Source of the DNA: Blastocystis sp. Blastoise
Lineage: Eukaryota; Protista; Bigyra: Opalinata
Length of the DNA stretch: 64,000 nt
Direction of reading: 5' to 3'
Assembly (NCBI GenBank): GCA_039096225.1
Contig: JBBPEB010000029.1
Coordinates: 926,928-990,927 of the forward strand
Shown here: one piece after another, positions 18,396-35,650 of the stretch
Position numbering within the stretch: position 1 is the first letter of the stretch
Layout of the letters: every line of letters starts with the position of its first letter
Made by a program: the position numbers and the translations under genes
Notes under the pieces: generated by a model
Database searches by the model: none
What the model saw: only the letters and a program-made list of their open reading frames with translations
Told to the model about the DNA's origin: nothing

Positions 18396-19101
18396 TCTCA
18401 CTTCTTAAACTAACAAACAAGGTGTGTTCATAAAGCCAATTTGACACAACAATCCATTCATAAAAAGAGAAGAAAACCACCAGTTCTTTTTCCTTCGATT
18501 CTATTGGATGAACTAGATTCTTACACAGATTATTTGATGAATCAATTACTTATCCAATAATCAATGGTTAACAGAGAACCAATCATTTTCCCCTTTCTTT
18601 GCTTCATTTTTTATTTTTTAATCAATTGTTCCATCATTAAATAAACCGTGAATTATTATTGATTGTATAGTAGAAAAACAAAAATAACCTTGATTATTTT
18701 TTGATATAGAGAGAAACAACCGTTGAATGTTTTCCCTTTGATTTTGTTTCCCCGAAAATCAGAATCATTCTTAGATTTTTTGGACTTTGAAAACAATTGA
18801 CATAAATAATATATTTTCATATATATATATTTTGAATTATTTTCTAAAAAATTCAGTATAACGATGTTTTTTCGTTGTTTTTTAGGAATTAAAAAAATGA
18901 AGATAAACAAGAAAATGTGTGTTTTTAATTTTTCTGTATATCTTCTTGAGTATTCAATATATTATGTTCAATTTTGTATGATATAAACAAGACAATACGT
19001 TTAATACTATAGATAATTATTTAATATTTTAGATCCTAAAATGAAAACAAAATATATACAATAAAAAATGATTTTTCCATAAAAAATCGTAAAGTTGTCT
19101 A

Positions 19102-19540
19102 CAGCCCCTTCCCTGTCACTGGACGAAATTGCCACGTGGCAATTGTCACAAAATTTTCTGACAAAAAAGTGACGATTGCTTATAACTTTTTTGGTTTTCA
19201 TTTTAAAAATATAAAAAAAATATTTTCAAACTCAGCTCATCAAGACACGTCGATTTACACACTTTTCATGAAAAAAGGACCGGGTGACATAAAAAAGACA
19301 ATTCATTCATTGACTATTTTATTATGACATGACAGTTTTTGGCTCAAAACATAATATTTTGGTATAGAATGTATAATTATTTTTAAATAAGTCAAATAAA
19401 ATGTTTTTTGTGACACATGTTGTGACAGATACATGACTGAAAAGGTTATAACTCATTAAATAGCAACAAGCATGAGTTTAATATGTGACTATTTGTGTTA
19501 AGTTGGGTGACAAATAAAAATTATTTTGTGACAAAAGTCA
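19102..19540. repeat. Left TIR and subterminal motif cluster of the hAT element
   Basis: TIR at 19102-19136, perfect 18-bp palindrome AATTGCCACGTGGCAATT at 19127-19144, and about 8 TGTCAC/GTGACA-type motifs up to ~19535. Confidence 0.85.
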
Positions 19541-20023
19541 ATTGCTAAATATATTTTGTTGTAGGTTATGTTAAAGAGTTTTATTTATGTTTATAATGAA
19601 TAATATTGTCAATAAACTCTAAAATAATATTATAAAAAATAATAATGTAATTAAAAAGTTTTTATTTTTGTTAAATATCATGAAGAAGTCTTGTAGGGAC
19701 TCTACAGATATACCCTGACTAGTAATAAAAATTAAATAAACAAAAAACATATTAAAATAATTTTTTTCAAAAACCAAACAAAAAACAACAATATGAACAA
19801 AAGTTGGATTTGAAAAAACAATACCTCCAACAAAATGATTTTTAATAGTCTTATAAAATGGTTTTAAAATGTATTTTATATGAAGAATAAGTCACATAAC
19901 ACAGTTATAATATTTATATTATAAAATATATTGTTTTTATGTTAAAAAGAGAAAAATAAAAAAACGATTAGTAGTCACTTGTTTTATAATTATTGTATCA
20001 CTAAATGGCAAATTAAATAAAGG

Positions 20024-20095
20024 AGTTATTTGGTCGAATGGTTAGTGCTTATAAAATTTTTACATGGTCGACGGATCGATGCTTACAAGGAACTA
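20024..20095 (+). pseudogene. Degenerate tRNA-derived sequence (A box, B box, T-run)
   Basis: TGGTCGAATGGTTA (A-box-like) and GGATCGATGC (B-box-like), weak acceptor pairing AGTTATTT/AAGGAACT, followed by T7. Arms pair poorly. Confidence 0.5.
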
Positions 20096-20989
20096 TTTTT
20101 TTAAACTTTTTTTAGAACTGCTATTTACTAATGATTTAATTTAAAAACAGCTTTGTTTCATTTTTATTATTTTTAACTAATTATTTATGTCATTGATGTG
20201 TGCTTTTTAGTTTAGAATCAACACATCAATAGACAATTTCTTTTCAAAAATTAGTAAATTTTATTTTAAAGCGATTCTAAATATTTGTGGAATGCTATAA
20301 GCGTAATAAAAGGCCATAAATATTAAAATTGAGGATTTCAACTATATTCAAGCCTATTATGTACATCATTACTATTATAAAGCAAATAGGCAAAAAAATT
20401 CCCATTGGTCAGTTTTTGGAAAATGTATTTGATTGGCTAAGGTATACTATAGTTTGTACCCACAACTCCTCTAAACTTACGGGAAGTTAACTTTTGGTTG
20501 AAACACAGTTCAATAGGATATAACATGTAGTTGTGCACCGTATATTTGGTTAAGCGATATTGTTTATAATTAAAAAGTTATTAATAAAAGAACAGAAAAC
20601 ATGATTTTTGAGTCGTTTTTGATTGGCTCTTTGGGATGACCCCTATAAAAATTGTTGACCAGACAATTGAAAAATAAACATGGGGTAAACTTGATTTTTT
20701 CTCAATCCCACAATATACGTTATCCGTGTTTATTCTTTATATTTATCTATTTTTTAATACTTTTTCATATTGAACACGTGAGGCCTTAACGGTCAAATTT
20801 AGATTGTCAATTTGACATGATATTCTGATTCAGGAGGTCAAAAAACCTAGGTGTAGCGATTTTGAGCTCCTGAGGACGATTTTTGAGTGATCGATATTTT
20901 CATCGATCTTCTTATAATCAACTAATATTGTAGAATTGTAATCAATAGGTCATTAAACTACTATAGTAGAAACAGAGTCTTAAAATAAC

Positions 20990-21980
20990 AAGTTTGAGTG
21001 TCACAATTTTGAAAAATGTGAATTAAGTGGTCTTAGAGTAAGAGATTCAATAGAATGACTTTTATTTAGTAAACTAGACTTATAACTCTATACTATGTTA
21101 AAAGAAGATTAAAAATTATGAAGGTCAAAGTGTATGACCAAATGACAAAATGTGTCTTAAAAAGTAAAATGGCTTCTATATGTGTTTAGAATCATATATT
21201 AAGTCTATTCTATGAATAAGAGCTTTAAATAAATAGTTTAAGGTTGTCAAATTTAAAAGAATGTGTAAAACATAGTCTTAAACTATGAATAAAAAATTTA
21301 GAGATATTAATTAGTGTACAGCTGTAGTAGCTCTACAACATATCAAAAGTACAGTTAAAATAATTTTTAGAGAGTGGATGTGTGAAGGGTTGTGACTATT
21401 ATTTAAAATTTATTTTTACTTCAGTTTGAGCAAAATCGTGAATTTCGTGCACTGTAGAAAAATTGAGTCAAAAAAACAACTCTAAGGGTCTTAAATTTAA
21501 AAAAATGTAAAAACGAGTGACTTAGAGGACGAGATTCAATATTTGAGTGTTTATTCATTAAACTAGATTGTATGACCTATATTATGTCAAAAGGAGGGAC
21601 GAAAATATGTTGATCAAAGTGTATGACCAAATGGTAAAGTGTCTTTAAAAGTGTTATGGTGATGCCAGTTGTGTTTAAGGAGTAAATCAAGTTTACTCTT
21701 AAAATATCAGCTTTAAATAACCAGTTAAAGGTTGTCTATTTATCAAAATGTTTTAAAGACTGTCTTAAACAAAGGGATTCAAGAAGTTGACTTTTATTTT
21801 ATACATAACATGTATATATAAACACTTTACTAAAAGAACTTTGGAAAATATTGTGGATGAGTGTTTTGTCAAATGGCAAAGTTGTATCTAGAGTTGATTG
21901 TTTCCATTCATTTTTGTTTAAATCAATGTTTTATGTCTACTCTATAAGAATAACCTTTTAATACTGAGTTTAACGTTTAA
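20990..21980. repeat. Diverged ~244-bp tandem array A (about 4 units)
   Basis: Unit starts of the form '(aag)gttgtc.aattt..aaaatgt....gtctta....agagattcaa' at about 20996, 21240, 21485 and 21729. AAAGTGTATGACCAAATG occurs in alternate units (~21127, ~21616). Confidence 0.75.
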
Positions 21981-22306
21981 AAGTCAACATGTGTGTTTGG
22001 TTTGTTTACTTTTAATTATTAAAATTGAGTTTAAATTGATAAATTATGTCAGACACGTCTATATTGATTGATTCAAACAGTTTTGAGATGACTTAGTTGC
22101 TCGAGTTAAAATGGATTTTGTTCTCATTCTGACTGTTGTTGAGAAGAGGAAGTCTAAAAAAAACTATAAAAAGTTAGATATATGTATGCAATGTCAAAAT
22201 TGAAAAGTATAAAGTAAAATGGATTAAAATGAATTTAAAAAAGAGAATATATATATATAATAATAATATGTAAAAAAAAATATTAAAAAACAGGAGAAAA
22301 ATAACA

Positions 22307-22373
22307 CTTCATGTCAGGAATTGAACCTGAAAACAATCTATAATGATTGCTTCTCTCCTTCTAGAGCATAAAG
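22307..22373 (-). ncRNA. Compact tRNA-like cloverleaf, copy 1
   Basis: Minus strand reads CTTTATG-CTCT agaagg AGAG-aa-GCAATC attata GATTGT-tt-TCAGG ttcaatt CCTGA-CATGAAG, followed by TGTTATTTTT. Transcription is not demonstrated. Confidence 0.65.
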
Positions 22374-22398
22374 GGAGTTTATAAATAATAATAATAAT

Positions 22399-22401
<3 letters not shown>

Positions 22402-22462
<61 letters not shown>
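22402..22462. repeat. (AT)n microsatellite
   Basis: Direct read. Confidence 0.95.
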
Positions 22463-22472
<10 letters not shown>

Positions 22473-22475
22473 ATA

Positions 22476-23170
22476 GGAATGAAGGAAGTAGGAAGAAAGA
22501 AGTAGGAAGTAGGAAGAAAGAAGTAGGAAGTAGGAAGAAAGAAGAAGGAAGAGGAAGAAGAAAGAATGAAGAATGAGGAAGAATGAAGTAGGAAGGATGA
22601 GGAAGGATGAGGAAGAAGGAAGAATGAGGAAGGATGTAAAAGTAGGAATGATGAGGAAGAAGGAAGAATGAGGAAGAAGAAGGAAAAAACAAGGAAGAAT
22701 GATGAGGAAGAAAGAAGTATGAGGAAGTAGGAAGGATGAGGAAGAAGTAAGTATGAAGAATGACGGATGAGGAAGAAGGAAGAATGATGAGGAAGAAGGA
22801 AGAAGGAAGGATGGGAAAGAAGAAAGAAGGAAGCAGGAAGAAGGAAATGATGCATGATGAAGCAGGAAGAAGTAGGAAGAAGTAGGAAGAATGCCAGATG
22901 AGGAAGAAGGAAGTAGGAAGAATAAGGAAGACGGAAGAAGGATGAGAAAGAAGGATGAGAAAGAAGGAAGAAGTAAGTAGGATGAGGAAGAAGGAAGAAT
23001 AAGGAAGGAAGAATGACGGATGAGGAAGGAAGGAAGAAAGAAGTAGGAAGGATAAGAAAGACGGAAGAAGAAAGAAGGAAGAAAGAAGGAAGAAAGAAGT
23101 AGGAAGGATAAGGAAGAAGTAAGAAGTAAAATGAAGAAGAAAGAAGGAAGAAAGAAGAAAAAAGAACAAG
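22476..23170. repeat. ~700-bp polypurine tract (AGGAAG/GAAGAA/GATGAG-based)
   Basis: The plus strand is almost entirely A/G. This explains the Phe/Leu/Ser-rich ORFs on the minus strand. Confidence 0.9.
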
Positions 23171-23850
23171 AAGACTATAAAACCTATATATAATAGAAAA
23201 CCTATAAAAATAAATAAATAATAAATAAATAATAAATAAATAAATATAATAAATAAATAAATAAATAAATATAATAAATAAATAAATATAATAAATAAAT
23301 ATAATAAATATAATAAATAAATAAATAAATATAATAAATAAATAAATAAAAAACATAAATAAATAAAATAAAAAACATAAATAATAAATAATAAAAATGA
23401 AAATAATAAATAAAATATAAATATATACCTAATAGATTAATCTGAAACCACAGACTAAAGAAGAATGACATGAAAAAACGAAGACGACAACACATCAACA
23501 ACATTTTCTTTCCTATAGAATAAAAATAATTAAAAACTATTTAATAAATGATATAAAAAGACAAAATAAATAATATAGATAACAAAAATATAAAATAAAA
23601 CAAAGTAATGAGAGAATTAAAAAACAAATACTATAAAAATAAATATATATTATATACCTGACACAAAGTAATCCAATTCACATAGCCGTGACCACTTCAA
23701 GAACTCTTTACTACAACAACCAAGACAAATACAAGAGAATCCTATAAAAAAGTGTATTATTTTGAATAAATAAATAACTATATAGATAGATAGATATAAT
23801 GCAATATAAAACAATATCAAATAAATAAATAAAACATACTCAGTCAATCA
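23170..23850 (-). other. Spliced unit with two 84-nt phase-1 exons running into the pyrimidine tract; function unknown
   Basis: Exons 23658-23741 (GFSCICLGCCSKEFLKWSRLCELDYFVSG) and 23429-23512 (GKKMLLMCCRLRFFMSFFFSLWFQINLLG), each flanked by TAG and GTATAT. A further acceptor lies at ~23183-23202. Confidence 0.5.
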
Positions 23851-24099
23851 ATATAATCAAATATATAAAAAATGTAAAAAACTATGTTTTTTGGGTACCC
23901 AAAATAATTTTAAATATAAATGACCCATTTATTACTTTTGTAAATAAATCAATGAAAACTCAAGGGTTCTTATGATTTCTATTAAGTTTTAAGAAGCATA
24001 TTTTAAAAAAAGACCCTTTTCTTTAAAAGTGGAAATATAAACACAATTTTATATTAAGAGAGAATACTTATTTTTTATAATTAAATTGATATCTAAGAT

Positions 24100-25290
24100 G
24101 CCTCAGAAGGCATGATGCTATCAAGATTGAAGTGTGTAGATGGAAAAATATACTTTTTTTCAAAAATTTCAGGTTCTTCTACTCAATAGGATCCAGTTGT
24201 GTATGTTCTTAGTCTTGGTGTTACTTGCTCTGATGGTCTTAAAGGTATATATTTTCGATTTCTTTTTTTTTAATTATTTATTATATTGTTTTAGGTTCTT
24301 CTATGTTATTTGTATCATACGGAGGCTGTGGTGTTGCCTGTTATGCTAACTGTGAAGGTATGTTGTCAATGATTTGTTTTTATTTTTTTATTTTTTCTTA
24401 TATATAGGTTCTTCTGTTGTTTTAAATGATGGTAATGGTTCTAATGATGCAGATGTAGGTTCTTCTTGCTTTATAGATGGTATGTTACCAATCATTTGTT
24501 TTTTTTTTTTATATTTTATTATTATTTTTTTATTATTTCTCTCTATATATAGGTTCTTCTGATGCTTTCAATACTGCTGTTGATGTTATTGGTGATCAGA
24601 CAGACTGCTCCTATGGTATTAAAGGTATATATATATTGTCATTCATTTATTATTATTTTTTATTGATTTATTATTTGTCTATTACTGTTTCTTTATAGGT
24701 TCTTTTATTGATGTGGGTATGGTTGTTGAAGATGATAATAATTAAGGTATGCTATTTTTAAATTTAATTTAGTTTATTATTGTTTTTTATTTATATATAG
24801 GTCCTTCTATTCTTATGGAGTCTTCTATTATAGGTAATGATACAGGTATATTCTTATTTCTTCCTTTCTTTTTTTTTAATTTATTAATTATCTTATCATT
24901 ATATATAGGTTCTTCAAGTCAGTTAAGATATCATGGTTATTCTTCTGTTCCTTCTTTAGAAGGTATATATATTTTTATTGTTTATATATTTTTTATTATT
25001 ATATTATATATAGGTGTCTTTTCTAATAGGGGATCTTATCACCCTAATGTTAGCTTTCATTTTAATAATAAAAATGTATCTAAAGGTATATATATATATA
25101 TATAACAAATATTTATAATATTTCTTTTAATATATCTATATCTTATATCTATATAGTGATGGTGTGAATAGTTTTTAATACTGAAGGTATATATATATAT
25201 GTTAGATATATTTATTATACTATCTCTTATTATATATATATATCTTTTATCTATATAGGTTCTCTTAGTGTTATGGTTATGTTTAGATTT
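24100..25290 (+). pseudogene. Array of at least 9 symmetric phase-1 micro-exons, mostly starting G-S-S; three exons carry in-frame stops
   Basis: Exons at 24173-24244, 24295-24357, 24408-24479, 24553-24624, 24699-24746, 24801-24845, 24909-24962, 25014-25085 and 25157-25186 (72, 63, 72, 72, 48, 45, 54, 72, 30 nt), all bounded by AG and G|GTAT. Stops: TAG at 24187, TAA at 24743, TGA in the 30-nt exon. Confidence 0.65.
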
Positions 25291-25689
25291 TTTTTTTTCT
25301 TTTGCTTATTATTATTATTATTTTTCACATTTAATAGCTTTCTATTATCTGCTTTCTTTATATTATTTATTTATTTATGCTGTTGTTATCGTTTTAGCTA
25401 CTCTATATTTAAATGTTTTCTTTTGTTCTATTTTTGTTTTGTTCTTTTTCTTTTTTTTTATTTAAATTGTGTCGACTATTAAGATAATTCTTCAATTACT
25501 TAATATATTAAATAGTGTCAAGTTTTTAAATGTTTGGATTCAATTTAATTTAAAATATCTATTGTCCACTTTTAACTTTATTTAGTATAACTGATTTAAT
25601 ACTGTCAATGATTGAGATATTTAAGTTTTGTTTTTCTCCACTAATTCATCTTGCATATACATATTATTGAGTAAATACAAAATCATAAA

Positions 25690-26430
25690 AGTAAGTTTAA
25701 GGTTTTAAAATTTAAAAAATTGTAAAAAAGGTTCTTAAACTAAGAGATTCGAAATTCTAAAAATGATTTAATATACACTAAGCTAAATTCTACAACATAC
25801 TAAAAATTAAGAGAATTTCATTTTTGAAAAGTTAATTAACAATGTGTTTGAGTTGTCTAGAAATTTTAAAGAGTTAGCTTCTTTGTTTAAAATTGTGTTT
25901 TTATTATACTATGAAAATTTTGACTTTTAAAAACAAGTTTAAAGGGGTTTATTTTTTTAAATGTAGAAATAAGTTACTCAACGGACGAGATTCAATATAA
26001 AACATTTTATTTGTCAAACTATGATTTATAGTCTAAATTATATTAAAAGAAGTGACAAAAATACTCTTGAAAAAGTGTATGACCAAATGTAAAATATTTA
26101 TAAAGGGTGTTAAAATGGTAACTAATGTATTGATAGAGTTATGTTGAGTATAGTGTTTAAATATTAGAGTTTTAAATTAACTATAAGTGTGTCAATTTTT
26201 CAAAATGTATTAAAAAGCGTCATGAGGTCAGAGATTCAAGACATTAAACTATAATTAATAAATAATACAATGAGATCTATACTGTGTGAAAGTTATGTCT
26301 AAAACGATTTTGATACAGTGGATATCGAAATGGTAAAGTCTCTCTAAAAGCGATATTGTTGATACTTTAAGTATAAAAATTCTATTTAGATTGATTTCAT
26401 TAATATTAATTCTAAAGCTATGTGTTTAAG
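25690..26430. repeat. Diverged ~244-bp tandem array B (about 3 units), same family as array A
   Basis: Unit starts at about 25699, 25942 and 26186. Shares GGACGAGATTCAATA and AAAGTGTATGACCAAATG (~26072) with array A. Confidence 0.75.
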
Positions 26431-26757
26431 TCGTTAATGTGAAAATAAATGTTGATATTGTTGTGTTAAATTTGTTTTAGTTTTATGAAATGGTTAAAAA
26501 TAGTTTAAACTACTTTATTCTAATCTATTTAAATTAATTTAATAAAATAAAAATATTTTTCAATACTTCACATTGTGACCCATTTCGAGATTTATTAGCT
26601 TTAGAAATTCCATAATGATTAAAAAAGTAACTAAACTATTTATAAATACAAAATATATTTAAAAAATAATAAATAACAAATATAATGAATCAAACAAGAA
26701 TTTATATATTTTTTTTTGTTTTTAGTTTTTCAGATATTATTTAAATAATCTATTTAG

Positions 26758-26827
26758 TTCTTATATCAGGAATTGAACCTGATTACAATCAATAAATGAT
26801 TGCTACTCTCCATATAGAGTATAAGAA
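26758..26827 (-). ncRNA. Compact tRNA-like cloverleaf, copy 2
   Basis: Minus strand reads TTCTTATA-CTCT atatgg AGAG-ta-GCAATCA tttat TGATTGT-aa-TCAGG ttcaatt CCTGA-TATAAGAA. Confidence 0.65.
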
Positions 26828-26995
26828 GTGTTATTAAAATAATATATATAATATATAATATATAATATATAATAAGTAACATATTATAGATAATATTTAA
26901 TAAATAATATATATTATATAATATATAATATATAATATATAATAGATAAAAAGGAAAGAAAGTAAATAAAAACCAAACAGTTATTATTCATTGCA

Positions 26996-27042
26996 GCCGC
27001 GGTCCGGTGCCGTTAGGCCCCGGACCTGCGGCGTGACCCTAG
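26996..27042 (+). mobile_element. Helitron-type 3' terminus (GC-rich hairpin followed by CTAG|T)
   Basis: Hairpin GCCGC-GGTCCGG-t-GCC gtta GGC-c-CCGGACC-t-GCGGC at 26996-27032, a 6-nt spacer, CTAG at 27039-27042, then T. The 5' TC end was not located. Confidence 0.65.
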
Positions 27043-27067
27043 TTTTAGTAAGAAATAAAATTGAGAA

Positions 27068-27140
27068 AATAGTTGGTATAGTTGACCAGCGGTGCAACTA
27101 TTGAATTGGGTGTCGCTGGATCGAATCTCATGTAGGGCAT
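27068..27140 (+). pseudogene. Degenerate tRNA-derived sequence upstream of the transposase
   Basis: TAGTTGGTATAG (D-loop-like), GTCGCTGGATCGAATC (variable loop and B-box-like), then T-runs. Also an 8-bp stem AATAGTTG/CAACTATT. Confidence 0.4.
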
Positions 27141-27580
27141 TTTTATTTTTACAGTCATTTTTATTGATTTTAATATTTACGTTTTTTAAATTTTATATTT
27201 GACTTTCTAGACATAAAAGTATGTTAGACAGATGAGCCAATATGTATTCATTTAATTATTAAAATAAGGGACGATTCTAAAATTTTGAAGTTAATTGCCA
27301 TTCATCGCTCATCCATTACCTTCAAAAAAATGAAAGTATCACCAATCGATAGAGCGCATGTTTTACACCCTAGCTGGACAAATGAGACCTATTAAAGAGG
27401 AATTAAGCAGTTCAAACGCCGTTTTAAAACAAAAAACGGTCATTGAAATAAGATTGTTTTAATTTTTTTAAAAGTTTTTTTACACTTTTATTTTTTCAGT
27501 AAAAATATAAATATTACCGTGAATTTTAAAAGTTATTTTAATATATTTTTTTTATATATATTTATTTCTCCATTATAAAA

Positions 27581-30500
27581 ATGATATCAGCGTCATTTAT
27601 TATATTTTCATTACCGATATATGTTAGACTATATATTGGTCAAACAAAAGAGGAATATTATGAAGATACAAATGGTAAGTATTCAATAGATGATCTTATT
27701 CCTCATTTTAAGGTATGTTTATTATTCTTTATTCTTTATTATTATATAGAATGGAAGATCAATGAAATGTAAAGAATATAAGCATTTCATTGACTCTTTA
27801 AAAAATTCAAATTTTAATATTCCTTATGTGATAGAAGGTATGTACATATTATTCATTTATTATTATTTAGAAATTGAAAAGCAACAAGATTCCTTTGCTA
27901 CTAAAAAGAATAAACATTTTTCGGTAATATGTTCAGGTATATTTTTATAGTTTATATTTCAATATTATAGATAACTTGTCGCTTACTAATAGAATTGAAA
28001 AGACTATTACAGACTCTAATATGCTTCCAGTTGATGCTACTATTATTAAATGTAGTAATGATGGAATTATTAATGGTATATATAAATATATAAGTATATA
28101 TATATTTATATAGTATCAACTAAGCCAGAAAGGTCAATAATTGATAAATTTATTACTGGTAATGGTTATAGACTACATTATATGTATTGACATATAATAT
28201 TTTATAGATGGAAGTAATAATAGTGATCATTTGAATCCAGATATACAAAACAAAAATATTCAAAATAATGATATACTAAGTATTAATGGAATATCTACTG
28301 GTATATAATTTTTTTTAAATATATTTATGTATTTATATCATTATATTTGTATATAGTTAGTGATAAGTCAAAAGTAAAGCAGACAGATGAATTACAAAAA
28401 CAAACGTCAATTACATCATTCTTCAGTATGTTGCATTATTATATATGCTAATAGTATTAATTATTATTTATGAATAACTATCTTCTTATAGATAGTGATA
28501 TTGCTCAATCTACTTATCAAAAACATACAGCAAACTTATCATCAATAACAGTTCAAAAACTTTGTACTCTATCTCGATTTGTTTCAGATGGTTTCTCTTC
28601 TTTAGCATCATCCTCTCTTTCATTAGTAACAGATATAGATAAATTATATAGCCTTCTTCCAGAACAGTATCATTTTGAGCAGAATAATAGTATTGATTGT
28701 ATTCCTGTAACAAAATCTGTAAACAAATCATCAAATCAAAATACAATTTCATCAGGTATAGCTTCTTCTTCAGCTGCATTTAGTTATGATATATCGATAA
28801 TACAAGGAATAATAGATAATAATGGCATATTTTTAAAGATTATAAAAGACATTATTGAACAGAGTTATGATGCAAATATATGTATGAAAGATATTATACA
28901 AAGATGGAGATGTTACGTAGATATTCATTTACCTGAATTAATAAAACTTATTTCCTATATAACTGATGATCATCTCTTCCTTGATGTGGAAATGTGTAAA
29001 TGTCCAATCCTCAAAAGTCTACTGAAACATAATGATACCTATAATAAATTTATCATGTATAATACTGATAATCAAAAGTGGTATTGTGTATCTTGTTTGC
29101 TTTTTTCAAATGAGCCTAATCTTCTTGGAGAGATATATTCAGCATCTAATATTAATAATCATAAGAATTTGAAGTTTCATAAAGATTCGATGAAAAGCTT
29201 TAAGTCTTTATTGAATAACCTACAAAACAATCAATCACTTCTTATCACTAATAATCATTCTGTATCTACAAGTAATAAAAAAGTTTGGAAGTTTTTCTTA
29301 TTAAAAGTGTTCAACTGTATATGTTTATGTCTCTCGAGTATCCACTCGATATATGGAAATACTACTAAGATTTATTCTCCTCATTCTGGTATATTTTTGA
29401 AACTATTACTCCTTACAGCGAAGAATGATTCTTTATTTAAACAATTTATTGAAGAAAATAAAAATATATATCAATCGGTTAGATCTACACAGAAATGGAT
29501 AAGAATAATTTCAGATAATCTTTCATTAACACTTAGAAATAAGGTAGGAGATAGAATATATAGCATTACTACTGATGGAACTACATGCCAAAATATTGAA
29601 CAAATGATTATAACAATTAGATACTGCGACGATACGTTTGCTATACATCAATACTTCTTGAGCCTTATGGAAGAAACTTCTTCATCTGGAATTGAGCTTG
29701 CTAAAAGTATCAAATTCTGTTTAAAAAAAAAATGTTTAAATGTCAGTGATTTATGTTCAGTATCTTTTGATAATTGTATATCTAATACGAGTAGTACATA
29801 TGGAATTATTTCTGGTCTAGAGCTTCCTTCTGGAACCGTTTTAGGTTATGGATGTCGTGCACATCTTCTAAACTTAGCTTTGGTTGACTTGCAAAATAAT
29901 GTTGTTGACTCAACTAGGTATATTTCACTAATTAATGATATTGCAGTATCTTGGTCAAGGTGTTCCCGTCTACGAGTATTAATAAAAGGTAATAATTTTA
30001 ACTTGTATACTCTTCCTCAAGTATCTCAAACTAGATTCATAGCAAGATACTTCTCTATACTTCCATATATAGCTCATCCAAAACAAACTCTATGTAAGAT
30101 TTTCCTACTTTATTTCTATTCATACAATAAAAAAAGTGTTTGTTATAGCAATGCTGAGGCAATGCTTAAATCATTAGGTGAGATATCGTTTCATTTGTTT
30201 TTAGAATGCTGGTTTAGAATATTGTCTGTAGTGAATCATGCATCTTCTTTGCTACAATCTGAGTCACTTACTGTAAAGGATTCAGTGAAAATAATAATGG
30301 AATTATATGACAATATTTCGTGTCTATCATCTTCCAATAATATTAAAGAAATTTATTTAAATGCAATACAAAGACGCGAATACATTTATGGTCTTCTAAG
30401 TGATTTGGTTGATTGCTTTCAACAGAATAAGTATGATAATACTAGTGATATTTCTATTGGTAGAATATTAATTATTATGAAGAAATTTCCTGAATATTCT

Positions 30501-32150
30501 AGTGAATATAATAAATTATCTGTTGATGAATGGAAACTAAATTATAAAGAAATGAAAAGATATGACAATGAAGAAGAAAATGGTATGTTGACGCATAATG
30601 ATGTAATTGAATCTATTGACACTATTGACTGTACAACTTCTTTGCATTCTTCTTATTCAATTAAGGAGTCTATTAGATCGATTCTCAACTACAGAGATGA
30701 ATCTGATAAAGAGAATTTCTCTAGTATGTGTAAACATAATGGAATTGACATTCCAAAAAGAAAAAAGTATATATTTTATAGATATTATTTATAATTTAAA
30801 GTTTTATTAGCTTTTATATTTAATATATCAATAGAGTTAGACAAGATGTATTAATTAATAATGATAATAATCCTAAAGTGGCTCCTGTGATAGAAAATAG
30901 AGAAAGAATTGCTTCCGAATTTGCAAAAAATAATCGAGTAGTGTCAAGCCTCAATTTATTTACATCAAAACAATTAGTTGATGCTATTATAAGTGATAAA
31001 ATAAAGAAAGAAGATATTAGGAACGTTGATAATACAAATATGAGCGCCATTCCTGATAATGAATTTCCTGAAATTTTTCAAATAAACGAAAATGATATCA
31101 ATATTCTTTATAGTTCTCTTATTTCCTCTCAAAATCAAACAGAATGTATTAATTCATCATGTCCAAAGAAAATGAAAGTGAATCAATTTCAGTCAACAGA
31201 TCAGAATCAAACCAACTTGATACTAGGAGTTGCTCAACAAAAAAGAAGTCGTGGTAGACCCAAAAAGACTCTAACTGGTGCAGATTCAAGTGTTAACAGT
31301 CCAAAAAGAATTGTAGAAAATGAAAATAGTGGTTTCAAAAGAAATACAGACTATCATGATGATAATACTTGTAACAGATCTTTAATGGACCAGAATTTGA
31401 ACACCCAAGATGATGATAAAGGCGAAGTATCAACAGATGAGAAACGTAAAAAAGTTATTTCAATTATTTTATCTCAGAAATACACGTATGTATTATATTA
31501 TTACAATATTTAATATCTGTAGTATTTTTTTAGAAAATGAGAAAAACAATCTGTATCGCTTCTCGTCAAATTTCAACTTAATGATTCTTCAGCTGAGACA
31601 AAATATTGTTGATCGTCTTTTTAAATCAATTATACAAGATCTTTCACTTTCTTATTTCGTTACACCATCATTAATTATTGAAACAGAAGTTCCTTGCCAA
31701 AGATTATTTATTGATACATTTTTCAAGCTATTTTCTTCTAGATTTCAGCCTAATTATTGTTTTGAAATGTCGAATATCATGCAATATCTAAAAAGAATGA
31801 TTAACTTATCGTCTTCAGTCACTTCACTAGTAGATCTTGTAAAAATGGAGTTCCACGAGTTTTCTCTTTACTACGAAATGACTGTTAGTTTATGTCTTAC
31901 AGTCAACCCTACTAGTATTAAGAGTGAGACTTCTTTCAGTACGTTAAAAAGAGTAAAATCTTATTTACAGAATGGAATGAAGGGTGATTTATTGGACGCT
32001 TATATGTCGTCTACCTGTAATGAAGTTTTAATGGATTCTCTAGATTCTTCTGCAATCGTAGATGAGTTTATGAAGAATTTGCACTTGGTACCTTTAAGTA
32101 ATTCGCTGATCCAAAAGGTTTTAAATATGGAACTTGTTAAAAGTTTATGA
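27581..32150 (+). CDS. hAT transposase (ZMYM1/Tip100-like type), intron-containing, apparently intact
   Basis: Zn-finger-like WYCVSC...H...H, first catalytic D in YSITTDGTT...EQMIITIRY, second D in VSFDNC, CxxH motif GCRAHLLNL, SQTRF, and a C-terminal dimerisation domain PTSIKSETSFSTLKRVKSYLQNGM containing the catalytic E. Several short 5' introns plus introns at ~30768-30834 and ~31486-31533. The start codon is approximate. Confidence 0.92.
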
Positions 32151-32652
32151 ATTTATGTTATCATTATTATTTACTTAATTATTAAGTCTTTATTATATTT
32201 ATATGATCGATATTATGTATAAATTATTTCTATTATTTAAATTTATTTCAATATAATTTCCTTCTTTTTTCAATAAATGTTTTACCTAGGATTCTTTATA
32301 AAGAATCAACGATATTCAATAATTATATACCAAATAAAATGATAAATAAACTAAAAATATAACGATAGAATCATTATGTATGAATATAATGTAAAAAAGT
32401 TATCTTTACAAATAAATAATCAATTTATAATGTTGAGATATGCAAAAATAAATGATTACATGAATTATGACAGTGAAATTTTTTTTAAAGTTGTTCCTTT
32501 TGAATGAATTACTGACAAAAGTATCTCAAAATTATGAACATATCTTTTTTTTCACCAATTTAAAAACCTAAATATAATTAAATATTAAAACATAATATAT
32601 AATAAATAAATTAGAAAGAGTTTATATTATAATAATATAATATCATATTTCT

Positions 32653-32717
32653 TTCAAGTCAGGAGTCGAACCTGATATAAATCCAAATAGGATTCTAAAT
32701 CTCCATCAGATCTTGAA
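32653..32717 (-). ncRNA. Compact tRNA-like cloverleaf, copy 3 (diverged sequence, same fold)
   Basis: Minus strand reads TTCAAG-ATCT gatgg AGAT-tta-GAATCC tattt GGATTT-ata-TCAGG ttcgact CCTGA-CTTGAA, with a canonical B box GGTTCGACTCC. Confidence 0.65.
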
Positions 32718-35368
32718 CACAAATTTATATAACATAAATATTTATCTTTAGGGAATGAATCACAGTATTTTCAAGAGAAATAGAATTTGTTCGTGATACA
32801 TCATTTAAGGAAATAGAATGACTATCATCATGTAAAAAGATTTTCGGAAATAATAAATAATAATAAAAGAATCGAATTAAAGTAGTTAGCAAGTATAATA
32901 TGGTATATATGGAAAACGTGCAATTAGTAATATTATATACAAATATCCATATTGAAATAATACTTAATTCCTTTGAATATAGTAAAACATATAAAAGCTA
33001 ATAGGAAAAGAAGTAACTGTGTTAATAATAAAAGAAAACGCCAAACATAGAATATAAGATAGAAAAAGATGCAATATATGCTAAAATACAGTTATATATA
33101 GAAACAATTAGGTAGAATTAAAAACAAAATATAAAAGTACATAGTATGTACAAAAATAAACATGAACATCTAATAATGGAGACAAAATGAGTTGTATTAA
33201 ACATATCCATGTTTTCTAAAAGACAATAATAGAAATAAATAAAAATAAGGATAATCAGAAGATTAAGTACACCGAAATGAAATTTAAATAATAGTTAGGT
33301 GTACTATCAGAATATAATATTTAATTCATGAGAAATGTAGAAGTAAGTGAATAGAAAGGAAAGAAACAAGTGGATAAAACATCGATAGTAAGAAAGGTAT
33401 GATATATAGGAAAGATTCGAGAGTATTACAGTAGATAGAAACTATTAGTAGAAATAAAACTATTTTAATAGATTGTACAATTCATATTAGTAGATAGATA
33501 AATAATAATACAGAAGTAGGTTAAGGAAGCTAGAAAATAATGAAATGAAAGAAAACATAACAAACAGTTACATATTAAATCGACATTTAACAATAACATA
33601 AAAAGTTGTATAAGGATAATCAAATGAACAATAGATACAATCGGCGATATAATAAGAAGAGATATATGAAGAAAAAAAATAAGTGTTGATGAATGAAGTA
33701 AGATGGATCTCAATTACATTTAAATTAGTAGAAGGAAATCAGAAAAGAATAAAAAGAATTTAAGATGAAGTTTAATAAAAACAGGCATAATAAACTTAAT
33801 ATTAAAATAATAAATCGTGCTTTTTCAATAATAAAATCAGATAGATTAGACATATATGGCAGAATAAGATTCATAATAATAGAGAAACAGAGAAGAAGAA
33901 TTAGCTCTCATTGAATTAATCAATGAATACGAGACTTTAGTCAATGAATAGTTAAAAGCAGAAGTATAGTAGGAAATATAATTCGTACAATTCAAAATGA
34001 AGAACAAACAAAAGCACAACCAGGACACCATAATAAAAGGAATATGAACAAAATCAGGGATGAATAGACATAATTATCATCAAAAGGAGAATACTGATTG
34101 AATAAAGTATTATTAATATGAATATATTAATAAGGAAGATAAGAACGACTAAAAGAAACAAATTCACATCATTAGATAATAGAAGATCAAGTTCTAATGA
34201 ATAATTAGTTTGAATAAAGAAAGAAGCCAGGAGTGTATCAGTCACTATGTAAAAGAAATGAGTAAGATTTAAGGTAATAAAAACCAAAACAATGTTCATA
34301 TATTAGAAATATTTGAGATGAGAATCTAAAACGAAAAATAATATATAAATCATATATAAAGTGGTAAAAATTTAAAGGATATAGCGATATTTATTATAGA
34401 AATCATTATCAAATGAAATATCATGATAAAGACAAAGAAACTTAGAGAATGCTAAATACATTTTTTCTCCTAAAAGATTTATGACACCAAATCAAAATAA
34501 TAAATAGGAAACAATTGAATAAATATTAGTTTGTATAATATTTAAGAAGAATATATGATCATATATACATATGCAAAGAATATTCCAATTCTATTTCATC
34601 CCATTAATCAATATTATCTATATGAATCAAATGTATTTGATAGACCTATAAAAAAATTATATAGCAACTAAAAGTACAAGGAATGAATCAATTGTAATAA
34701 GTATTAATATAACTAAAAGAATTACATATATAGTTTAACCTAAAATCAATACAGAAGTAATAATTATATTCTTGAAGTATATCAATAGAAAATATCTTAT
34801 TGAGAAAATGCTAAAACAGATTGGTATTAATATTTTGTAGTGATTTAAAAAAAATTCTCATGAATTTCTATAAACATTTTTTATTGAATTATCAGCTAGA
34901 CGATCATATTTGTATAAGTTATTATGATAAAACATTCAATACAAATATACTCTATTCATTTCATATAAGAAAGTAACTAATTTGTGGATTGATGTGTATT
35001 CAAACTAAATCAAGATATAAAGACATTCATTGATTAGGTGTTTCCACAGAATTAATTGCAAGGAATTAAACTAGGGAGTCTTGTAAAGTTTGTCATTGTT
35101 GAGTATTTCTGAAAGTATTATTAAACATTTTAAAGAATCATTGTCTGTTATCATATTTTCAAATACTTTCATTATCAAAGTCATATTAAGCAAAGAAATC
35201 AATGTAGTCACAAATCATGTCATGATTCTTGACATTTTTTTCCTTTTGTTGTTAAGTACGTTATTATTATCTTTAGAATTCTTACAATATAACAAGTATT
35301 CAATTTCATAGAAATCACTTACGGCTTCAGTTTATCTGAATTCAGCATTATTAAGTTAGGCTGAAAAA

Positions 35369-35420
35369 GTGTCACAAAAAAATAGCGTGGCAATTGTCAC
35401 AAAAGTCAGGGAAGGCTCTG
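35369..35420. repeat. Right TIR and subterminal motifs of the hAT element
   Basis: GTGTCACAAAA and CGTGGCAATTGTCACAAAAGTCAGGGAAGGCTCTG, followed directly by the TSD. Confidence 0.85.
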
Positions 35421-35650
35421 GTTGTCTATAAGAAATTATTTTTTTTAATAATTGTGAGAATATTGATTTTACAAGATAATTATTATTATTTCTCGTGATT
35501 TATTTTTTAGGCAGGTCATTTTTCTTGTAAAACTTTTCTTGTTTGAGAATTCTTCCAATTTAAAAGCAAGTTGGTATTTTTATACTATTAAATATTATGA
35601 TAAGAATGATCTTAATCTAATTATTGTAGAATTATAGCCAAATTGAGAAA

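Follow-up and report, generated by a model that had tools for sequence, protein, structure and literature searches.

The window analysed here, a 64-kb stretch forming the last 64 kb of contig JBBPEB010000029.1 (GCA_039096225.1) of the tortoise-gut stramenopile Blastocystis sp. Blastoise, contains a DNA transposon of the hAT superfamily, 16,319 bp in length (19102-35420; positions are those of the window, and features lie on the plus strand unless stated otherwise). This transposon is very probably an autonomous-type hAT of about 9.6 kb, a member of an oversized Blastocystis family, into the left arm of which a 6.7-kb Helitron has inserted. A preliminary description of the same DNA had presented it as a giant hAT by which non-coding RNA modules and spliced genes are transported; we found that large cargo is indeed moved in this family, by a sister subfamily that carries a fragment of the host gene UTP20, but for the window copy this reading was not supported. 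The element was inserted between two head-to-head host genes, one of them a mitochondrial carrier and the other a 783-aa gene. All of the related loci used for comparison (L001-L012) come from the window's own assembly; L011 is the window locus itself (24,570 bp identical), and one family locus, WA158_003501, was left out of the set.

Membership in the hAT superfamily, whose elements move by cut-and-paste transposition, was confirmed by an 8-bp target-site duplication (TSD), by short terminal inverted repeats (TIRs; 10-25 bp is usual for the superfamily) with subterminal repeats, and by a DDE transposase with a CxxH motif and a predicted RNase H fold with an insertion domain. The TSD is perfect, with GTTGTCTA present at both 19094-19101 and 35421-35428, and the imperfect TIRs (19102-19136 on the left and 35386-35420, minus strand, on the right) match in one register at 12 of the first 14 nt and at all ten of positions 26-35; both features had been correctly recognised in the preliminary description. 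That description had also reported subterminal TGTCAC clusters. On the left these are evident, with eight TGTCAY/RTGACA motifs in the first 430 nt, but on the right there are just four in 600 nt, including two TGTCAC copies in the terminal 50 nt. Outside the element the density is 0.31 per 600 nt; the cluster is mainly left-sided. Paired ends with different 8-bp TSDs were found in six other copies: L007 (8,702 bp), L002/L008 (33,958 bp), L009/L001 (31,212 bp), L005 (18,978 bp), L012 (23,637 bp) and a miniature of 193 bp. With the window copy this makes seven copies with seven different perfect TSDs, and the ends can therefore not be attributed to chance. The first part of the left arm (19102-20365), which holds the subterminal motifs, is 86-93% identical to six other copies, and its second part (27043-27580), which includes the presumed transposase promoter, can be aligned to relatives. 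The right arm (32730-35330) is A-rich, apparently non-coding and unalignable with the other copies. A hidden second gene in this arm was considered and rejected, as a six-frame comparison against all loci yielded low-complexity noise only.

The transposase gene (WA158_004889, 27581-32150) is composed of ten exons (27581-27712, 27750-27837, 27871-27936, 27971-28075, 28114-28158, 28208-28300, 28357-28425, 28492-30766, 30835-31485 and 31523-32150), with 4,152 coding nt and a product of 1,383 aa. Its nine GT-AG introns (33-68 nt) have consistent phases, and the exons and split codons are free of stops; the public model, P0159 (1,394 aa), differs solely in retaining the 33-nt intron 2. The catalytic residues (D572, D637, C665xxH668 and E1321 in P0159) align with those of ZMYM1-like hAT transposases and are kept in every complete family member checked, so that the earlier claim of an intact transposase holds. 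The predicted fold matches that of the Hermes transposase (E 1e-7), and the top ten Foldseek matches were all Hermes; neither the main exon nor a profile had a sequence match in the PDB, Hermes being found by the fold search alone. Taken together, TSD, TIRs, transposase and fold bear out the hAT identity first proposed. Pfam-type searches were run exon by exon, with P0159 used where a full-length protein was needed, and DUF4371 was matched in 9 of 11 aligned family members; the hAT dimerisation domain (PF05699) was matched, at E values up to 0.1, in seven of seven. The family transposases are about 1,300-1,420 aa long, 684 residues separate the second D from the E, and an AT-hook-like RGRP motif is present in six of the seven copies checked. 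Third codon positions differ by 47% and second positions by 12%, a pattern indicative of purifying selection.

In protein searches, eleven transposase loci were found in the Blastoise genome, at 40-66% identity to the window protein, and no protein outside this genome exceeded about 25% identity over the transposase core. The nearest non-Blastocystis proteins are ZMYM1-like (22-23% identity), and these neighbours suggest that, of the Ac, Buster and Tip groups, the family may be Tip-like. A metagenome scan with the transposase returned 33 loci (20-27% identity); these were excluded from the comparisons, and some of them may be animal, possibly human, host DNA.

The segment at 20366-27042 (6,677 bp) was shown to be a composite non-autonomous Helitron nested in the hAT. 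Helitrons are characterised by a 5' TC, a 3' GC-rich hairpin followed by CTRR (here CTAG), an AT target and the lack of a TSD. The window segment lies between an A and a T, has no TSD, starts with TC, and ends with a GC-rich hairpin and CTAG (26991-27042; 33 kcal, z = -5.0); across the copies, TC preceded by A was observed at five of five 5' ends, and the hairpin with CTAG followed by T at four of four 3' ends. In each of the six related left arms that extend across the site (L002, L003, L005, L007, L009 and L012), that of the closest relative included, the equivalent of 19102-20365 directly abuts that of 27043, and excising the segment restores the junction spacing of the relatives exactly, where printed. 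The inserted segment also occurs free-standing in L003, L004, L005 and L010. Nesting is common at these loci and even reciprocal, as the hAT of L003 lies 140 bp inside the 3' end of a member of the same Helitron family.

The composite make-up of this Helitron, with a young 5' half, a filler that contains a spliced fragment, and a second 3' half, was shown by comparison with its relative in L005. In that 2,709-bp copy the 5' 1.4 kb (approximately 90% identical) is joined to the 3' half (70-73%), whereas in the window an extra 3.9 kb separates the halves; it is made up of a terminator-less, diverged 3' region, a purine-rich simple-repeat tract (22475-23427; 85% purine) and the spliced fragment (24112-25260). 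The latter, called as a 161-aa gene, consists of short Ser/Gly-rich exons that are mostly of phase 1 and contain in-frame stops, and gave no Pfam match. Degenerate repeats of about 245 bp form two sets, at 20966-21977 and at 25686-26359, the second marking the start of the downstream Helitron half. Bypass of a terminator through to a downstream Helitron gives such a layout (PMC6431247), and we infer that the filler was gained in this manner, the first terminator having been missed and the element ending at a downstream Helitron. No RepHel open reading frame (ORF) was found inside the insert and no RepHel partner among the loci read; the hairpin had 0 matches in metagenomes. The elements thus described have in common with known non-autonomous Helitrons that carry captured gene fragments the terminal TC, the hairpin with CTAG, the AT target and the missing TSD, and differ from them in that the window Helitron carries tRNA-shaped modules on the opposite strand. 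The 8-mer GTTGTCTA recurs twice within the 245-bp repeats (at 21731 and 25852) with no adjoining TIR, which was taken as a coincidence.

That the entire 16.3-kb unit is a giant hAT, with the non-coding modules and spliced genes as its cargo, appears very unlikely. A perfect TSD and an open transposase do enclose the full length, and the family is able to move 18-19 kb together with a host-gene fragment. Yet the insert is private to the window locus among the copies read, being missing from every related left arm that spans the site; it has Helitron ends and free-standing relatives, and large private insertions are usual in the family (25.3 kb in L002, 18.0 kb in L009/L001, and 4.5 kb in both L004 and L012). 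The approximately 11.7 kb outside the transposase that had been regarded as structured cargo was counted correctly (11,749 bases) and does contain structured non-coding modules, but 6,677 bp of it (57%) are nested Helitron and the remaining 5.1 kb are the hAT's own arms (1,802 bases on the left and 3,270 on the right). As for the spliced genes, the claim was not supported for this copy: the fragment, with its in-frame stops, sits inside the Helitron.

Some observations weigh against a hAT invaded by a Helitron and equipped with modules of its own. Pfam matches of the window's own exons are below the cut-off (for PF05699, a weak match of 14.5 bits with a cut-off of 21.4), and in the Blastocystis family the conserved Trp that follows TR is replaced by Phe. 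Family copies were located via called transposase genes, so that copies with no called gene escape detection; the hAT may have jumped to its present site already holding the Helitron; and the tRNA-shaped module of the right arm, described below, is absent from the right arm of L005/L012 and is thus dispensable for transposition.

Regarding the age of the insertion, no near-identical second copy of the window hAT was found, the closest being 93% identical in the left arm, with a protein identity of 59%; these data therefore do not show that this copy took part in a recent burst or is currently active. The family did move recently, since L007 and L002/L008 are 99% identical outside the 25.3-kb insert of the latter. 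A search for an empty allele with a flanking 2,049-aa ORF gave no match; the loci read were all from the window's own assembly.

The L005/L012 sister subfamily is a cargo-carrying giant hAT that moved with a spliced fragment of host UTP20. The two elements (L005 1433-20410 and L012 1009-24645) are located on separate contigs, differ in their flanks and TSDs, and share 91-99% identity over their length; minus private inserts they measure about 18.3 and 19.1 kb. Cargo that moves should recur in at least two copies, each with its own TSD, and this is the case here: both hold an intron-rich stretch of approximately 6 kb that is annotated as a UTP20_N gene, the long exon of which (83.6 bits, cut-off 27.6) is open in both, with six synonymous and three non-synonymous differences in 230 codons. 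In the window itself, a decayed hAT-family end of the L006 type was observed at 43660-45256, beside a decayed spliced fragment 70-82% identical to this UTP20 cargo.

These results can be compared with known elements. In common with Hermes and with ZMYM1-like (DUF4371/TTF-type) hATs, the Blastocystis family has an 8-bp TSD, short imperfect TIRs, subterminal motifs, a D-D-CxxH-E transposase with a Hermes-like fold, and a putative C-terminal dimerisation domain. Typical hATs are 2.5-5 kb long (PMC3942097), and the preliminary description was right in placing the window element above this range, as it measures 9.6 kb even when the Helitron is removed; the clean relative L007 is 8.7 kb. The family thus differs from typical hATs in its size (8.7-9.6 kb without inserts, 18-19 kb in the sister subfamily), and also in the RNA polymerase III (Pol III)-type and tRNA-shaped modules in its arms. 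The basic size is large because of the 1,383-aa transposase and the long arms. TIR elements that have grown through the gain of host DNA and move together with it include ToxhAT, a 14-kb fungal hAT with ToxA, and Pack-MULEs (PMC9594970, PMC6431247). L005/L012 fit this description, although their cargo is a truncated housekeeping gene and not an adaptive one; in the window copy, unlike in ToxhAT, the extra DNA is a nested element. The family extends the size of hATs to 9 kb in its basic form, and to 18-19 kb where a fragment of host UTP20 travels with the element. The window copy is a warning for genome scans: the interior of a 16-kb unit is not cargo merely because a perfect TSD encloses it. 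In the Blastocystis genome paper (PMC10690189), transposons are tabulated only.

A tRNA-shaped module of about 68 nt is present three times in the window element, always on the minus strand: in the hAT right arm (32651-32718, 0.5 kb past the transposase stop codon) and twice in the Helitron (22306-22373 and 26758-26827, the second 215 nt from the Helitron 3' end). Among the hATs, the window copy, L001, L006 and L007/L008 have it 0.5-0.9 kb past the transposase stop; three Helitron copies have it at 212-215 nt from their 3' end, and an 18,030-bp Mutator-like insert has it at two positions. A four-arm cloverleaf, kept by covariation, was shown for this module: a 7-bp acceptor stem is directly followed by a 4-bp D stem with a D loop ending in GG, then by a third arm of 7-8 bp, the loop of which is variable, and by a canonical T arm and T loop. 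In a plain alignment 95% of the cells are paired and 9 of 16 pairs have both-sided changes; none of 500 shuffles was as good, slid controls reached 33-48%, and RNAalifold, unaided, produced the same fold. A model-fitted alignment, which is biased towards the model, gave both-sided changes in 17 of 24 pairs. Between hAT lineages the module is 58-68% identical, with unalignable flanks, and in most cases it is preceded, on its own strand, by 1-2.7 kb of DNA that is purine-rich on the plus strand. ARAGORN returned 0 matches and Rfam, including tRNA and mascRNA models, no relevant match at E values up to 10; a literature search, incomplete in its coverage, found nothing relevant on tRNA-like or B-box modules in DNA transposons. 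This covarying module of unrelated DNA transposons thus has no counterpart in Rfam or in the literature searched.

The left arm contains two further units, each with an A-box or A-box-like stretch, a B-box and, 11-13 nt further, a T-run. Unit 1 (20031-20102) ends with a T7 run, and unit 2 (27074-27144), in which the first box is A-box-like, with a T5 run. With the Helitron removed they lie approximately 970 and 1,340 nt from the hAT end; the B-box of unit 1 is 966-972 nt from it in the four copies measured, and L004 shows the second unit alone. A cloverleaf was also tried for these units and rejected, no supported fold having been obtained, and the absence of a conserved fold suggests that selection acts on a Pol III promoter and not on the shape of an RNA. 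The element has four strict B-boxes and the 46 kb of window outside it 0 (0.18 expected), by a pattern picked after the sites had been seen.

From known hAT biochemistry, the transposase would bind the TIRs and the subterminal motifs, excise the hAT, and reinsert it with an 8-bp duplication. That the arms carry the hAT's own regulatory kit is the least certain part of our proposal. All three hAT modules, two on the left and one on the right, face inward, towards the transposase gene. The left-arm units may be Pol III/TFIIIC sites that hold the transposase promoter open, and the right-arm cloverleaf a tRNA mimic, cut by RNase P/Z, so that antisense transcripts would end before they overlap the transposase mRNA. 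The cloverleaf layout, in which the acceptor stem leads straight into the D arm and the third loop is variable, presumably resembles that of mascRNA. The mascRNA and menRNA of MALAT1 and NEAT1 are tRNA mimics that end a long non-coding stretch and are cut by RNase P and Z, and no other long non-coding RNAs are known to use this route (PMC12941219). Like them, the cloverleaf stands at the end of a longer non-coding stretch, its cleavage being putative; unlike them, it has no Rfam match, no upstream triple-helix motif obvious by eye, and is located in protist DNA transposons. By this analogy (PMC12941219) a cut site for RNase P/Z that ends antisense transcripts into the transposase gene is the role that we favour, possible though doubtful. 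The wider proposal, that hAT, Helitron and Mutator-like elements have adopted one tRNA-mimic RNA element and Pol III units as working parts, using the host tRNA machinery to shield themselves from read-in and antisense transcription and from silencing, is a tentative one that falls somewhat short of an even prospect.

An additional scenario is that the cloverleaf modules are not cut sites but Pol III genes for a small tRNA-like RNA, acting as a barrier or as a silencing decoy. Nearly all of them have a perfect B-box and a degenerate A-box-like stretch at the usual spacing, and in the 2.7-kb Helitron the module is preceded by just about 213 nt of element. Most of the modules, however, have C instead of G at the third A-box position, no oligo-T terminator is conserved, unlike in the left-arm units, and the GG and T-loop are equally well explained by the tRNA elbow; we consider this scenario unlikely. 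It is more unlikely still that the modules are passengers, such as the heads of old tRNA-derived short interspersed elements (SINEs) or tRNA pseudogenes, with no role for the elements that hold them. Their presence in three unrelated element types, their absence from one subfamily, and the crowding of the sampled loci with nested insertions would agree with it. But the shared body and tail 3' of the head that a tRNA-derived SINE would have are not found, as the flanks are non-homologous between host elements and align within one Helitron family only. Position and strand are, moreover, fixed in the hAT lineages in spite of the low module identity, pairing is kept in four arms, and no module was found in the 46 kb of window outside the element. 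Other roles for the modules take up the small remainder. If the shared tRNA mimic does act as a shield, it would place a MALAT1-like processing signal outside vertebrates and define a new class of transposon cis element; if RNase P cuts the cloverleaf, it would be a compact self-protection device that is open to testing, and would add another natural case of tRNA-mimic processing.

Several other insertions and neighbours were observed at the loci read. The 25.3-kb insert of L002/L008 (L002 14326 to L008 10078) is bounded by long inverted ends and holds about 15 genes, most of them intronless, with no Pfam matches; it splits a transposase, its target has seemingly lost 5 bp with no duplication, and it is possibly a Polinton-like or virus-like protist element. 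The 18,030-bp insert (L009 11595 to L001 10007) is a Mutator-like element with a 9-bp TSD, long purine/pyrimidine tracts and the two cloverleaf modules mentioned above. A second repeat family, of approximately 4.5 kb (L004 13495-18050, L006 17494-21626, the flanks of L007, L010, and L012 17461-21985), has copies that are 86-99% identical and repeatedly inserted within or next to hATs; its internal repeats of about 245 bp have a short motif in common with the Helitron repeats. Two small TIR elements, of about 0.67 kb (L005 19637-20300) and 0.52 kb (L003 1836-2357, L006 12921-13445, and L010 near 5750), were seen near or in hATs. A genuine tRNA-Leu gene is located at L001 20347-20430, 330 bp beyond the right end of one hAT, the other copies having no nearby tRNA gene. 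Finally, the window ends in a TTAGGG telomere (62220-64000), the inner part of which is rich in TTAGG variants, and degenerate subtelomeric repeats precede it.

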